Assembly (NCBI RefSeq): GCF_021869535.1 | Contig: NW_026262690.1 | Coordinates: forward strand, 36,084,001-36,148,000 | Reading direction: 5' to 3' | Length of the DNA: 64,000 nt | Source: Mytilus californianus | Lineage: Eukaryota | In this document: positions 21,597-28,025 of the stretch, one piece after another | How the letters are laid out: each line of letters starts with the position of its first letter | Numbering within the stretch: the stretch's first letter is position 1 | Position numbers and translations under genes: made by a program | Notes under the pieces: generated by a model | Database searches by the model: none | What the model was told of the DNA's origin: nothing | What the model saw: the letters and a program-made list of their open reading frames with translations, nothing else

Positions 21597-21892
21597 CCTT
21601 TAATCATTTATATTGGACAGACCTTTACTGAAAATGAACAAAATATAGTACAAGAACATATATACATGTAAAAGCAGACTAAAATCTCACAGCCAGCTGG
21701 CTTACTCATTTCATTGACAGATATAACATGTATAAAGCAGTCCAACTCATAAAATAGAATCAACATTCATATTACCTTATGTTTTATAAGCCTCTATTAG
21801 TGATGTTCCTGTTACCATGGTTATCGAATATAACCAAAAAACGACCAATTATTGTATTTTCGAATAAACCATAATCAATAATCGATAAAAGT

Positions 21893-22153
21893 CACAGGCG
21901 CTTGGGTATATGATACAGATATTTTTTTGGGATTTTTTTTTGTTGTTGATTAAAATATTTAATTTTCTATATTTATACTACATATCTATCACTACTGCGC
22001 ATGTCTCACCTAGTTTCGAGTGATTTTACCAACTCTTGAGACAACCCCCATTAATTTCTTAGTGTGGATAGTAAAAATGGGGGTTGTCTCAAGAAAATTG
22101 AATATTTAAAAAAAAATATCTGTATCATATACTGATATACCCAAGCGCCTGTG
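21893..22153. mobile_element. 261-bp MITE with 8-bp TSD (hAT/P-like)
   Basis: TIRs CACAGGCGCTTGGGTATA / TATACCCAAGCGCCTGTG; exact TSD ATAAAAGT at 21885-21892 and 22154-22161; internal inverted repeat TCTTGAGACAACCCCCA / TGGGGGTTGTCTCAAGA. Confidence 0.9.
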
Positions 22154-22519
22154 ATAAAAGTTAAAAAAAAAAATCTACACGAGTTATTTTTTTATGGAAA
22201 CATTTTGAGACCTTTTGAAAATGTAAAGACTGCCTCTAAACACCCATAACATATCTATTTTGTACATACACATTAATGAGACTTGTATAGGGTATATTGG
22301 GATACGGGATGTTTGCCATTTTAATTTTAGGGAGATGGGATATTTGTCCTAAAATTAAATGGGATATGGGATATTGAATTTTGAACATGAAAAATAATGT
22401 GGAATTTAAAAGTTAAGTCCAGAAATATTTACATCTCACTTGATAAAATTGCCAAAACTAATTTACTAGAAAAGGTCATTTTAGTGCTTTGTTGATTTTC
22501 ATTACATCATAATTCCAGA

Positions 22520-25500
22520 CAAATGAAAGCAACGGCAGGAAGAGTTATTGGTGTGCAACTTCTTGTTTATAGCATATTTGTGCATAACCACTTTATATAC
22601 ACACTGTATCAACAGACATTAAAAAGGGGGATTTTTTGCTTACCATGAAATTGATGATACATTTATATACAATGAGATTCATAGAAATGGTACAATTGAT
22701 TGTTAGAAAGTTCATGGCATTTCTCCAGTTACAACAACAGATGAACATAGAATAACCGCTTTAAGGATATATTTCTTAGATATTGATAACAAAACAGTAA
22801 AGGAAATAAATGTAGAGACCAAAGTTGTCAAACGATTGGCAGATACAGGTAGAGCTGGAAGTGAAGATGGATGTCAAACGACTGCTCAATTTCAGCAACC
22901 TACTTCTATGTGTTCAGAGATGAATCCTGTTTGTATGTGATACTGCTGTTGGTCAAGTGAAAACGATAACCCCTAGCAGTAGTTTACTCATATATTTAGA
23001 AATTTTACACAAACTCTTGTCAACATTTTGGTTTACTAAAGACAAACAGAACTTCTCAATAGATGATGCTATTTCAAGACTAGCTGACATTGATGACTTT
23101 CTTTGTCTTTGTGACATTGAGATTAAAACAATGACATCAGAAAACCATGCTCTTCAAAGTCCAGATGGTGCAAATTCAATGCAGACGAAACATGACATTT
23201 CACAGTTAATCACTGCGTTGAAAAAAAGTCTTAGGGATGTTGTGAATGAAACACAACCTTTATTCAAGGCAAAATTCTCGACGAAAAGTACATCCACAAC
23301 CATTGTTGAAAATCTTTTCTATGAGATGAGAGCAATTGATGACACACCAGTAATGATACAATTCGCTCGCAAATTTTCAAATTGTGTACAAGAACTATTT
23401 AAAAAAAATTACACAGATGTGTTTCTTGTATTATACTAGTGAGTATTCACATTATGAAAATTTTTCAAGTTATTGCTTGAATTATCATTCTCTTGAGGAA
23501 ATGTCTCATCCCAAAGAAGTAAAACTTTCAGACACAAAAATAAATGCAATGAGAGATAGAAAGTAGAAAATGGACAGTGTGTTCGCCAGTTAACGATAAG
23601 AAACATGAGCACCAAAGACCACGCAGGAACTTTTCTTTTGCATTGTTATATAAGGAACTACCTCCAGATGTTCATGAGCTAGATGTACATATACCAGAAA
23701 CTGTAGGTTCTACAGTTGAAATCCAGGAAATCAGAAATGTAATCTACAGCAAGGGATCAACAGTAGGTGTTTTTAAACGTGATATCAAAGGTCTACCATC
23801 TAGTCCTTTTTACATTGTCATCACATCAGATTGCTATAAAATGCCTGATGCCAAATTTTTGGGAAAGTGGTTTGCTCAGGACAAAATTCCCCCTCTTGAT
23901 TTCGTTGAGTGTACTATGCAGAAACATCAGAAACATTTATAGTAGAGAGTGTTATTGAAATTTACTATTAGATGACTTTCAAGCTGAAGACGATGGGATA
24001 GTAATTTATGCGACTGTCATACAAGTGAGAGGTTTAGCTAGCTATAAAACCAGGTTTAATCCACCATTTTCTACATAAGAAAATGACTGTATCAAGTCAG
24101 GAATATGACAGTTGTTATCCATTCGTTTGATGTGTTTGAGCTTTTGATTTTGCCATTTGATTAGGGACTTTCCATTTTGAATTTTCCTCTGAGTTCAGTA
24201 TTTTTGTGATTTTACTTTTTATGAAGATTCCTTTATGCTTGCATGACAAAAGTGTGTATAGCTTTGAATATAGTTTACTCTGGCACAAATATCGATTTTG
24301 TCATCAGCAAATTAAAACATAACTAAATTTGTATTCTTTTCAAACGGTGTTTGGGATGTATAAATACACATCCACTTTCATTTTCTATATAGAGATTACT
24401 CTATCTATATATAAAATTATACATATTTATTAAAAGGTTAACTCCTAACTATCCTACTGCCTGTCGATACTTCTACTTTGGCAGTGCACAAGCCATGTCT
24501 TCTTTGACTGTCCATGATAGTAAAACACTAAATCCTTGGGATGTGTTTTTAAATTAGTTGATTTTAGTCTGTTTTTGGCTTTTAACTAGCTTTCTGTAAC
24601 TGCCAGTACGCTCAAATCGTACTTTAGTGTTAATTTAACCTGTTGATACAAGTTGTATATACGTGTTCAGTGTGACGATAAATTTTCACTTTTGTTCTCG
24701 TACTATGAATAACAAAATTATCTATTTTGTATTAAAAAATATTTCCGTACTCCATGTATACCTTACAACAAAATTATTTTAATCTACTTGTGTACGTTAT
24801 TTTATTTTGCGGCATTTTATCCAAGGTTATGGTTGTCTTTCTGTTATTGGTTTACATCTAACCCCCTTGTTTTTATTAATTTTGTATTTACATTGTGTCG
24901 TAGATCATGTAGATCAAATTTATTCGTTCAATGTATATAGATATAAGATGTGGTATGAGTGCCAATGAGACAACTCTCCATCCAAGTCAAAATTTATAAA
25001 AGTAAACCACTATGTTCACTTGTTTTAATATATCTTTTGATTGAGTTAAGCCATTTCAATTGATATTTCATGGTGTGTCTTTCTATGTTGTGATGTTACA
25101 CTATTGTTTCAGGGTAGGGTGAAGGTTGGCGCCTATTAAAACGTTTCAACCCGCTGCATTTGTTTGCACCTGCCCTAAGTCAGGAACCTGATGTTCAGTG
25201 GTTGTCGTTTGTTGATGTGGTTCAAAAGTGTTTCTTGTTTTTTATATAAATTAGACAGTTGGTTTTCCTGTTTGAACTGTTTCACACTATTCATTTTTGG
25301 GGCCCTGTATAGCTTGCTGTTGGTGTGAGCCAAGGCTCTATGTTGAAGGCCGTACTTTGACCTATAATGGTTTACTTTTACAAATTGTGACTTGGATGGA
25401 GAGTTGTCTCATCAGAACTCATACCACATCTTCTTATATCTATATAAGATCAGATATGAATTATGTCACATTACAAGAAGAGGTGGAGATGGATTTAGAG

Positions 25501-25590
25501 GAGGCATCTGAAACCAATGTTGACCCTTTACACACGAGAGGAAAGAGGAAGCGAAAATCTCTATCTGACACTGCCTTCATATTTTACTGA
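22520..25590 (+). pseudogene. Decayed transposase-like gene with NHL/beta-propeller motif, split by nested insertions (~24022-25445)
   Basis: Frameshift-corrected reading: ..RLADTGRAGSEDGCQTTAQFQQPTSMC../LFVCDTAVGQVKTITP..LEILHKLL..STTIVENLFYEMRAIDDTPVMIQFARKF../FLYYTSEYSHY..*..CVRQLTIRNMSTKDHAGT../..PFYIVIT..GKWF.., then a C-terminal piece SDMNYVTLQEEVEMDLEE..RGKRKRKSLSDTAFIFY* at ~25450-25590. In-frame stops at 22704 and 23564 plus several frameshifts. Confidence 0.7.
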
Positions 25591-25629
25591 TTTAGTGATA
25601 ATTACTTTTAAATAACATGCCTATATCAA

Positions 25630-25805
25630 CATACACCTTATCGCTATTCCCGGCTGACCCGAGAATCTGTCCCGCTTGAACTTTTGACGTCATACAAAAA
25701 TCACTTTTCCATTGTGGCGACAGATATTTTGTATTGTGACGTCAAAAATTTACGGGAACCTGTGTGATGTCCAGTAATGGTGGACAAATAGCGATAAGGT
25801 GTATT
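25630..25805. mobile_element. ~175-bp MITE nested in the 3.9-kb element
   Basis: TIR atacaccttatcgctatt / aatagcgataaggtgtat; two internal TGACGTCA. Confidence 0.75.
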
Positions 25806-26333
25806 AACTTTTTATGTATCCACTGACGTTACAAACGTTACAAACGCTTAATTATATATTGGCTATTCCAAAGACATGTAGATTCAAATTTAAAGGCCTC
25901 TGGTTAATTCTGAATGATTAACTTTTCTCTGTGAAAAAGCTAATATCCTTACTACAACATGTATTTACGAATGTTGTATACAAAAATTGGTTTGGGAATG
26001 AATTAATGATTTTTTGGGATATTTGTAATATAATATAATAGTTTTAGGGATACGGGATATTTGTAAAAAAAAAAATACTTATTGGGATATTATGGGTAAA
26101 TATTATAGGGATATGGGATATTGGGACAAAAACTTAAAGGGATATGGGATATTGATACCCCCCTTAAACAAGCCTCATTAATTATTTTAAATTGAAAAGG
26201 GGATAATTTTTCAACAATTTTCCAGATCGAGCTAAATTCATTGCCAAAACTGCAGATTTACAAAATCTTCAAGAAGCTCTTCGTGTTTATACGTATTTTG
26301 ATTACAGTAACAAAAAACAACTGATAAACTTAC

Positions 26334-26450: not shown

Positions 26451-26544
26451 TTACAGATATTTTTCAGTTCGGGTTTCTCCGGTAAATATATTACTCGGAC
26501 CAAAAATGAAAATGAAACTAGAAAACAAGTAACATAATGTCACA

Positions 26545-28025
26545 TGAAACTAGAAAACAAGTAACATAATGTCACATTTAGAACAAAACAACATTTTATA
26601 TAATCTACAACATGGCTTCAGAAAAAACCGATCTTGTGAATCAAAATTAATTGACTTCATTCAAGAACTGTCATCTAGTAATGGTGGTGGTGGGGGGGGG
26701 GGGGGGGGGGGGGGGGGGTCAGTAATAATAGTAACATTCAAATTGACCTTATCATTATGGACTTTGCTAAAGCGTTTGATAAAGTTCCTCACCAACGATT
26801 ACTTTACAAACTTCAATACTATGGTATAAGGAAAAATACACTTAAATGGATCCAAGCTTTTTTATCCGATAGAACACAAACAGTTGTAATAAATGGTATT
26901 TCTTCTACATCAGTGCCAGTTACATCTGGAGTCCCACAGGGTACTGTACTGGGCCCCATATTATTTCTCATTTACATTAATGACTTCTCTGAATATTTAA
27001 CACATAGCAAATTAAGACTCTTTACTGATGACAGCATCATATATAGAGAAATCAAATCTCAATCAGACTGTGATAAATTACAAGAAGATCTTAACGCTGC
27101 AGCAAAGTGGGAAGCAGATTGGCTTATGGCTTTCCACCCTGATAAATGTACTAAACTTTCAATTTCACATAAAAAGAAACCATATTTACATGATTACATC
27201 CTTCATAGTCACATTCTTGAATCTGTTACATCTGCTAAATATCTGGGCGTTACTCTACAATCAAATCTTAAATGGAACCTACATTATGACAACATTATCT
27301 CAAACTGCAATAAATCTTTTGCATTCCTTAAAAGAAATTTAAAAATATCAAACACAGACATTAAATCAAGGGCATATCAAGCAATAGTCAGACCTAAATT
27401 AGAATACAGCTGCAGTTTATGGGACCCTCACACAAAAGATGCTACCCAAAACATAGAACTGGTTCAAAGAAGAGCAACTAGGTACATTTGTAACAACTAC
27501 CATAACACCAGTAGCGTTACAAATATGATGAATAATTTAAAACTACCAACATTAGCTGAACGCCGCCTTAAAACACGTCTTATTATATTTTACAAAGTAA
27601 TTCACGGCCTCATTGCCATACCATCTGAAATTTTAATACCAACAGACAGTAGAACAAGACAAAACCATCCAAATACTTATAGACATATACGAACCACAAA
27701 GGAAACATATAAGTGGTCATTTTTCCCACACACCATCATACAATGGAACATGCTACCTATAGCCACAGTACAGTCAACCACAGTTGACAGTTTCAGAGCA
27801 CACCTTACACAAGGTGTTCTCTGCCAACTGATTTAAATTTTTGTATATAATTTTTATTTTAATCACTAGTTTTTGTAATATACATGCACAAATTGTCAAA
27901 TTTGTATATATTTTTTTTGTTCTTTGGCATCTTCAAGAAAATTAAATTTTAACACGCATGCGCAACAACAAGTAATCTTCAGTATCCTGAAGTTTTGTTG
28001 TATAACTGAAGAAGAAGAAGAAGAA
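26545..28025 (+). mobile_element. 5'-truncated non-LTR retrotransposon (CR1/L2-group LINE), RT region plus 3' UTR and (GAA)n tail
   Basis: QHGFRKNRSCES, DFAKAFDKVPH, SGVPQGTVLGPILFLIYIND, LFTDD (RT active-site motif), WLMAFHPDKC, RPKLEYSCSLWDP, VQRRATR; ends in (GAA)6 at ~28008-28025. A 44-nt insertion at 26683-26726 causes one frameshift. Confidence 0.93.
26569..27836 (+). pseudogene. LINE ORF2 reverse-transcriptase fragment
   Basis: ORFs 26569-26829 and 26757-27836 join in frame (..ELSSSNNSNIQIDLIIMDFAK..) once the poly-G insert is removed; endonuclease and N-terminal RT are absent. Confidence 0.9.

Follow-up and report, generated by a model that had tools for sequence, protein, structure and literature searches.

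A decayed Mytilus element from a transposon family with a predicted P-like core and beta-propeller insertion domain

A 64,000-nucleotide stretch of the Mytilus californianus genome (positions 36,084,001 to 36,148,000 of contig NW_026262690.1; hereafter the window) contains a ~3.9-kb element in which imperfect terminal inverted repeats (TIRs) enclose a broken reading frame that resembles in part an NHL beta-propeller and in part a transposase. The question that this locus raises is whether the ends and the protein belong to one transposon and, if so, to which kind. An initial annotation, made from the letters of the window, had proposed that the parent protein is a transposase of the Asp-Asp-Glu (DDE) type whose insertion domain is a beta-propeller. 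Comparison of the element with independent copies in other Mytilus species, with full-length relatives in other lineages, and with a predicted structure of the transposase indicates that window 22278-26176 is very probably a dead, internally deleted copy of a DDE transposon that has a P-like core and a propeller in place of the GTP-binding domain.

Termini, target-site duplications and subterminal arrays

The transposon proper, window 22278-26176, has GAG...CTC ends and imperfect TIRs of ~15 bp, and there are no Ns over its length. The left TIR, GAGACTTGTATAGGG (22278-22292, + strand), and the right TIR, whose reverse complement is GAGGCTTGTTTAAGG (26162-26176, - strand), are identical at 12 of 15 positions, and outside them lie two copies of the hexamer ATTAAT (22272-22277 and 26177-26182), the second a direct repeat of the first. 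The 13-mers from which the TIRs had first been recognised (TGAGACTTGTATA at 22277-22289 on the + strand and TGAGGCTTGTTTA at 26165-26177 on the - strand) are weak evidence on their own, with 0.52 matches expected by chance and two or more matches in 9 of 100 shuffles. What confirms the ends is that similarity at the DNA level to independent copies from M. galloprovincialis, M. edulis and M. coruscus, found on the contigs behind fragmentary Mytilus gene models that were retrieved with the open reading frame (ORF) pieces of the window, breaks off precisely at the GAG...CTC termini. The terminus GAGGCTTGTATAGGG also bounds the copies L001 (M. galloprovincialis), L008 and L009 (both M. coruscus). 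These independent copies bear out the initial annotation's claim of a real transposon with imperfect TIRs; the interval that it gave, 22277-26177, is one base too long at each side, its first and last bases belonging to the target-site duplication (TSD).

The TSD is 6 bp long and varied in sequence. Where the window copy has ATTAAT on both sides, L001 is flanked by AATCTT and AATCTT, L008 by TCTAGT and TCTAGT, and L009 by GCCAAT and GCCAAT, and elements of other lineages (described below) are flanked by ATCACT, ACACAA, CGATAT or ACTTCA; among these eight insertions, whose flanks were examined, we found no common target sequence. Alignment of several insertion sites thus defines the duplication and settles a choice that the initial annotation had left between three lengths: the 6-bp option was right, and the TTAA option was wrong, given the varied perfect hexamers of the other copies. 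A 4-bp TSD with TGAG...CTCA ends would fit the window copy, L001 and L005 (an element from a Porites-type cluster) only if the outer A...T were coincidental, and it fails in L006 (from a further lineage) and L008, where the terminal bases would be non-inverted; because that reading needs the coincidence and fails in L008, we take the TSD to be 6 bp. The TTAA inside the window hexamer is an accident of one insertion site. Among the Mytilus copies only that of the window has TTAA within its hexamer, and the TTAA duplication of piggyBac and Sola3 was not found. We note that the M. edulis copy L007 has GATCTT as its right flank, while its left end, minus the first 7 nt of the TIR, directly abuts GATCTT (L007:5737-5745); a deletion by microhomology (CTT) that followed insertion would fit this loss, with the same hexamer on both sides.

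Inside the TIRs lie arrays of the motif GGGATA, four near the left end (array 22293-22400, motif starts 22299, 22337, 22361 and 22368) and eight near the right end (array 26017-26155), all on the + strand and none on the - strand. Since the motif has the same orientation at both ends, the two ends are not mirror images beyond the ~15-bp TIR; the GGGATAT subterminal repeats of the initial annotation are present near both ends, and are not inverted. The double motif GGGATATGGGATAT, allowing at most one mismatch, occurs five times, compared with 0.02 occurrences expected, and always within ~170 bp of an end. These arrays are likely to be transposase-binding sites. The first motif begins 22 nt from the terminus in the window copy, in L001, in L009 and in the unrelated L005 family. 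The other lineages have subterminal arrays of their own (GGGAAC in L005 and ACGGTAT in the family of the proteins P0165 and P0206) that lie on the ORF-sense strand at both ends. Counted from the left terminus their first motif starts at 22-27 nt, and counted from the right terminus their last starts at ~30 nt, as in Mytilus.

The coding remnant, its full-length relatives and their predicted fold

The coding remnant runs on the + strand from ~22545 to a stop at 25588-25590 and is co-linear with the last ~45% of the full-length family proteins, at 30-42% identity; in-frame stops interrupt it at 22704-22706 and beyond 23939, and its frame changes at least six times. Its first part (22545-22937), located by tblastn with residues 673-791 of the 1,216-aa protein P0158 and by translation, corresponds to the last two NHL propeller blades, as delimited on the AlphaFold2 model described below; it includes DTGRAGSEDG (22842-22871), the stop at 22704-22706 and a frame change near 22925-22937. 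LFVCDTAVGQV is read at 22927-22959. A helical bundle and the catalytic helix follow (22924-23436), with IVENLFYEMR at 23302-23331 aligned to E851 in helix 848-858 of the family protein P0103. The C-terminal region (23429-24007; tblastn with P0008 and P0158, and translations) is spread over several frames, which change at least four times, has a double stop beyond 23939, and comprises YYTSEYSHY (23429-23455), VRQLTIRNMSTKD (23581-23619) and a beta-rich C-terminal domain. The end of the remnant (25438-25590) consists of an acidic stretch, the basic tail RGKRKRK (25537-25557) and ...AFIFY before the stop, and matches the C-terminal consensus of the family, RSxRxRKR...FLxY. Homology starts only at residue 673 of P0158; parent residues ~1-670, including both catalytic Asp, have been lost, and all that is kept is blades 5 and 6 of the propeller, followed by the helical bundle, the helix with the Glu and the C-terminal domain. 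Pfam gave no match in the six ORF pieces of the window. All of the peptides that the initial annotation had quoted are present in the translations, the GAA codon at 23308-23310 in which it had placed the catalytic Glu aligns with the conserved E851, and its view that the Asp-containing N-terminal part is deleted agrees with where homology starts.

The relatives of this remnant are intronless proteins of ~1,100-1,250 aa from Mytilus, Priapulus, a cluster containing a Porites lobata protein, and metagenome-type assemblies. When the Mytilus gene model P0001 was used in an exhaustive HMMER search, multi-repeat NHL proteins predominated and only five single-stretch matches were informative. The most telling was P0103, in which residues 672-898 of 1,137 align in one stretch to residues 2-224 of P0001. 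A search with P0103 returned 22 relatives, including proteins of 1,099-1,255 aa from metagenome-type assemblies, M. edulis and M. galloprovincialis models and an 'uncharacterized protein' of Priapulus caudatus. Clustering at 90% identity gave protein clusters of 270, 141 and 125 members, the largest of which contains the Porites lobata protein. The similar proteins in corals and bivalves that the initial annotation had mentioned do exist; those of corals and molluscs are currently labelled 'uncharacterized' or 'unnamed protein product'.

Invariance was counted in an alignment of 14 full-length proteins, extended to 23 hits, with residues numbered as in P0103. Specifically, D115 (in VDGMALKPG), D279 (DSESKNK), D312 and H315 of a D312xxH315 motif (PDxVHVGK) and E851 (LTLVVENLFSEMR) are invariant in 14/14, as are eight Cys between D115 and D279. 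Across the columns covered by the 23 hits the exceptions are limited to two substitutions, of D312 by E and of E851 by S, each in a single protein; the E851 column, part of an ExxF..R helix, is covered by 18 members and is Glu in 17 of them. The spacing of the three catalytic candidates is D-164-D-572-E. Of 21 N-terminal parts, 7 match Pfam TNP-like_RNaseH_N, a domain of the P-element type, in the segment around D115, with a best E of 3.5e-5. No member has a Pfam match to THAP, TNP-like GBD (the GTP-binding domain), TNP-like RNaseH_C or Tnp_P_element_C at E up to 1. We note separately that SVRQxTVRNxTTKDxPGTLP (P0103 946-971; window 23581-23619) is among the best-conserved stretches of the family (R951, T955, K956, D957 and G960-P963) and sits in a low-confidence, unstructured part of the AlphaFold2 model, perhaps as a loop that binds DNA or a partner.

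AlphaFold2, run on the 23-sequence alignment, gave a full-length model with a predicted local distance difference test score (pLDDT) of 80.7 and a predicted template modelling score (pTM) of 0.74. The N-terminal 400 residues were also modelled alone (pLDDT 80.6), as Foldseek searches with the full-length model were swamped by propellers. With this N-terminal model, Foldseek against the PDB found only 6p5a (E 7.2e-7) and 6pe2 (E 1.4e-6) below 1e-3, both of them strand-transfer complexes of the Drosophila P element transposase. VIA-align likewise ranked 6p5a_A first (Z 9.3, with 255 residues aligned between model 6-396 and chain 153-430), and the next group, of retroviral integrase cores, had Z of 5.9 and below; after P transposase, the top fold matches were integrases, RAG1, Transib, ISCth4 and RNase H. 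The model places RNase H strands at P0103 105-118 (with D115), 159-185, 268-278 (D279 follows) and 308-311 (beta5, followed by D312), a helical linker at 313-387, 24 strands forming six four-stranded blades at 391-738, helices at 739-845 and the E851-bearing helix at 848-858. A helical hairpin between blades 2 and 3 (495-531) resembles a SAP domain: Pfam SAP matches 6 of 14 members at this hairpin, and Pfam NHL matches 11 of 14. By Foldseek the propeller region has a TM-score of ~0.8, normalised to the target, against six-bladed NHL and Pizza6 structures, and a PDB profile search with the full-length alignment found NHL proteins only (SOQ1, NHLRC2 and TRIM-NHL).

The catalytic core is thus predicted to have an RNase H-like fold with D115, D279 and E851 as its D/D/E residues. 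The GTP-binding domain of P transposase is located between beta5 and alpha4 (PMC7776569), and in the model this slot is filled by the helical linker, then the NHL propeller with its SAP-like insert, then helices that form a bundle. The proposal of a parental DDE transposase that has a beta-propeller as insertion domain agrees with this model, with the NHL and Pizza6 matches and with P transposase as top match, and predicted fold and conserved residues are compatible with a DD-E triad in an RNase H fold around the propeller.

The possibility that an unrelated TIR element captured a host fragment, NHL or 'transposase-like', by transduplication, so that ends and ORF have different origins, is raised by the fact that the window copy holds a gene fragment only. 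Full-length homologues of two other lineages nevertheless lie inside elements of the same design. In the Porites-type cluster, L005 has a 1,226-aa ORF in a 6,650-bp element with the TIR GAGCCCCTCCCAGGGG (16/16) and the TSD ATCACT/ATCACT; the 17-mer TGAGCCCCTCCCAGGGG of this element includes one TSD base. The P0165/P0206 family has identical 1,190-aa ORFs on five contigs, and four copies share the same 15-nt TIR, CAGGGTCGGCCAGGG, at different sites, in elements of 7,285 bp (L010-L012) or 7,274 bp (L006); the TSDs of L006 (ACACAA), L010 (CGATAT) and L012 (ACTTCA) are all perfect hexamers. Common to the lineages are [G/C]AG termini, a 6-bp TSD, same-strand arrays and an ORF in the same orientation. 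Because this layout is shared across lineages whose transposases are only ~35% identical, we conclude that ends and protein belong together. Capture is also difficult to reconcile with a remnant that extends to the natural C-terminus and stop codon of the family, and we consider it very improbable.

Around full-length homologues, perfect TIRs with TSDs were found in L005, L006, L010 and L012, and none of these elements has the Mytilus GAGGCTTGT termini. Several observations weigh against our reading. Among the Mytilus contigs examined we recovered no autonomous copy bounded by the GAGGCTTGT termini, a gap that capture would also explain, and the near-full-length M. edulis copy at L004:15668-19029 (one frameshift) is of another lineage and without TIRs. 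The full-length copy L011 has no TSD. The TM-score of the model to 6p5a is only 0.38, and P0103, the only member whose score was shown, scores 14.9 bits for TNP-like_RNaseH_N, below the gathering threshold of 24.6.

The M. edulis copy bears on a further alternative, in which the homologues would be host genes, single-copy and domesticated, and the element in the window a relic unrelated to them. No TIRs were found around it, even after extension to its upstream ORF1, it has no DNA similarity to the window element, and Priapulus has one annotated uncharacterised gene. Set against this are the clusters of 125-270 near-identical members, the identical ORFs on up to five contigs, TIR-bounded and at different sites, and a Mytilus remnant family that is itself multicopy with TSDs. 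The full-length homologues are intronless, multicopy and within TIR+TSD elements, and domestication of this kind seems to us barely credible. The reading that ends and protein form one transposon is accordingly retained, and we take the family to be a P-like lineage of DDE transposons whose predicted insertion domain, a propeller, is unusual.

Some features of the contigs that carry these homologues deserve mention. In M. edulis, L004:13000-27290 contains an 8.8-kb direct duplication of ~99-100% identity that holds the near-full-length transposase copy and that may reflect either recent segmental duplication or faulty assembly, and a 134-bp tandem repeat follows the transposase ORF (L004 19017-19540). 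No TIRs were found around the P0103 ORF on its 5.9-kb contig, L003. Downstream of this intact ORF lies an inverted partial copy of its 3' coding end (L003:5650-5830 against L003:4716-4906; 88% complementary over 41 nt, plus further arms), which points to a fragment of a second copy in inverted orientation or to rearrangement of the element.

The transposase, of ~1,100-1,250 aa, is encoded by one intronless ORF, possibly with upstream exons. A conserved ORF of ~140 aa precedes the main ORF in L010 (2339-2773) and L005 (3570-3989), beginning 335-390 bp inside the left TIR, and a homologue precedes the transposase in M. edulis (L004:10007-10336), where no TIR was found; identity between lineages is 27-36% (E 2e-15). 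The M. edulis gene model P0160 splices this upstream ORF to the transposase. Pfam gave no match in the upstream ORFs or N-terminal extensions, and no THAP match was found in the 14 full-length proteins either. The upstream ORF could be a 5' exon for the missing DNA-binding domain, or a second gene.

Nested insertions, copy number and state of the window copy

Nested repeats make up ~1.6 kb of the 3.9-kb element. Insertion 1 (24008-24232), a very high-copy short repeat, is absent from the copies L001, L002 and L007, is bypassed by a contig joint 24007>24233 and has extreme word depth. Block 2 (24262-25447), a composite that is likewise absent from these three copies and is bypassed by a joint 24261>25448, includes a 488-bp miniature inverted-repeat transposable element (MITE) with 69-nt TIRs (24945-25432), recognised by inverted-repeat detection. 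Insertion 3 (25632-25804) is a 173-bp MITE with perfect 18-nt inverted arms and is absent from L001, L002, L007 and L009. Both joints are found in contigs of M. californianus DNA runs, and therefore copies without nested insertions 1 and 2 are present in this genome as well. In the M. coruscus copy L009 the window sequence is continuous from 22275 to 24936, spanning insertion 1 and the first part of block 2, at a different site and with a different TSD; since this non-allelic copy carries part of the nested inserts of the window, the L009-type composite must have transposed after acquiring them.

Within insertion 1, window 24035-24231 has a summed word depth of ~4.9 million in one DNA run, compared with ~40 in the flanks, and is among the most abundant short repeats in the M. 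californianus genome; the RNA reads on the element stretch, too, come mainly from this repeat. The remnant itself has almost no RNA reads (one M. californianus RNA run, of which ~6% was read). Word depth, which is not copy number, rises from ~40 in the flanks to 100-400 across the ORF remnant and to ~6,500 in the two terminal bins. Because depth in the terminal bins is far above that of the remnant and the flanks, these data suggest that many short derivatives share the ends of the element.

Both junctions of the window insertion are bridged by contigs from three DNA samples in three studies, and no empty-site joint was among those listed in contigs of three DNA runs, although contigs cannot prove its absence; the insertion appears to be fixed, or else common, in M. 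californianus. Three other Mytilus species carry non-allelic copies that share the internal deletion. The window element is a dead, non-autonomous internal-deletion derivative that keeps its termini and arrays and has lost both Asp; it is too decayed to encode anything and would presumably have been mobilised by a transposase supplied in trans. For the window alone the outcome is modest: 3.9 kb of it can now carry the annotation of a non-autonomous, dead copy with three nested repeat blocks.

Two features lie beside the element. To its left, window 21892-22154 has perfect 20-nt inverted arms (TCACAGGCGCTTGGGTATAT) 223 nt apart, which enclose a second perfect 19-nt hairpin pair (22034-22094), and word depth in the 21868-22064 bin is ~29,000; this looks like another MITE abutting the left flank. 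Just downstream, window 26512-26575 is a perfect 32-bp tandem duplication (ATGAAACTAGAAAACAAGTAACATAATGTCAC, two copies).

Comparison with known transposon superfamilies

The D/D/DxxH/E signature and the multicopy elements with TIRs and TSDs place the family with the C/DxxH group (hAT, P, MuDR and Kolobok, together with Dada), as defined in PMC9587614. Its likeness to hAT (Hermes) lies in this shared group, in a Glu within an ExxFS-type helix after a large insertion domain, and in the CAGGG terminus of the L006 family, which fits the hAT pattern YARNG. Against hAT stand the absence of any Pfam dimerisation-domain match, a TSD of 6 bp and not 8 bp, and the position of Hermes outside the top 50 in both fold searches; the hAT5 and hAT6 groups have short TSDs.

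Kolobok, including the bivalve KolobokP, belongs to the same group, is abundant in bivalves and has a TTAA-specific 4-bp TSD (PMC9587614). It shares with the family a faint resemblance around the second Asp (SDGDSK compared with DSESKN) and purine-purine termini, which occur in two of the three lineages of the family. The family differs in its varied 6-bp TSDs and in having neither long terminal direct repeats nor a His-Me nuclease, and just one of six family motifs (the tetrapeptide HVGK) was found in the published supplements, outside the catalytic motifs; on this comparison of motifs we reject membership of Kolobok.

Dada (Kojima & Jurka 2013, PMC3706591) is closer in several outward respects, and membership of this superfamily would account for the length of the TSD (6-7 bp in Dada), for a DxxH and not a CxxH motif, and for hosts among oysters, cnidarians and other invertebrates. 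Dada transposases, however, have the catalytic motifs MDSTKK, VDRDCC, LDVWH and STSLESFH with the spacing D-68-D-176-E, N-terminal CCCC and C-terminal CCHC zinc fingers, and mostly introns, and they target small nuclear RNA or transfer RNA genes (PMC3706591). The family, by contrast, has VDGMALKPG, DSESKNK, PDxVHVGK and VVENLFSEMR, its far wider D-D-E spacing, intronless genes, eight Cys between the two Asp and no conserved C-terminal Cys or His. Six family motifs were looked for in the published alignment of Dada (Dataset S1) and none is present there, and the eight insertion sites have no sequence in common. Membership of Dada is, in our view, extremely improbable.

The closest relative is the P superfamily. 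The family shares with it the best structural match over the helix-turn-helix and RNase H N-terminal part (6p5a), the weak TNP-like_RNaseH_N matches, D/D/E residues with DxxH, and a large domain between beta5 and alpha4, together with structurally unequal ends, subterminal repeats that resemble binding sites, and internally deleted non-autonomous derivatives. Given that P transposase is the nearest structural and Pfam relative and has the DxxH signature in common, the family might be a divergent branch of P, already catalogued as 'P' in Repbase or Dfam, in which case nothing here would be new. Several differences argue otherwise. The TSD of the P element is 8 bp (PMC7776569), whereas that of the family is 6 bp; the family has GAG/CAG termini, TIRs of 15-17 bp, no detected THAP and an extra eight-Cys module between the first and second Asp; and Pfam similarity to P is below the gathering level in P0103, with no match to GBD, RNaseH_C or Tnp_P_element_C in any member. 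The alpha-helical GTP-binding domain of P is, by the model, replaced by a six-bladed NHL propeller with a SAP-like insert. Full-text literature searches, with Repbase and Dfam outside the comparison, returned no paper joining NHL or a propeller with a transposase insertion domain, and none describing a whole beta-propeller with a SAP-like insert in the slot between beta5 and alpha4. We therefore regard a catalogued branch of P as rather unlikely, and P proper is matched in structure and not in TSD or GTP-binding domain.

The label 'unclassified group' of the initial annotation is plausible, and whether the family is an unclassified superfamily-level lineage is roughly an even call. We hold somewhat more tentatively, a shade below even, the fuller proposal of an undescribed superfamily-level lineage in cnidarians, molluscs and priapulids, sister to P within the C/DxxH group, in which the GTP-binding insertion domain would have given way to an NHL propeller whose SAP-like insert binds DNA; transposition would then be independent of GTP, with a 6-bp stagger, and the propeller would be a new means of gripping DNA ends, target DNA or a host factor. 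On our main reading, that of a P-like DDE transposon, the transposase would bind the same-strand subterminal arrays (GGGATA in Mytilus), pair the two structurally unequal ends, excise the element by DDE chemistry and integrate it with a 6-bp stagger, the propeller/SAP module making contact with DNA or with a host factor where P handles its ends in a GTP-dependent way; the window copy could have been moved only in trans.

Insertion domains between beta5 and alpha4 shape the handling of DNA ends, which passes through hairpins in hAT and RAG1 and is GTP-dependent in P. If intact members of the family are active, they would offer a natural experiment on the role of the insertion domain, a P relative that may not need GTP, and a new lineage for the annotation of coral and mollusc genomes. 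The propeller itself resembles those of TRIM-NHL, NHLRC2, SOQ1 and the designed Pizza6 in being a six-bladed NHL-type domain, and differs from them in that it is predicted to be embedded in the catalytic domain of a transposase and to carry a SAP-like insert between blades 2 and 3.

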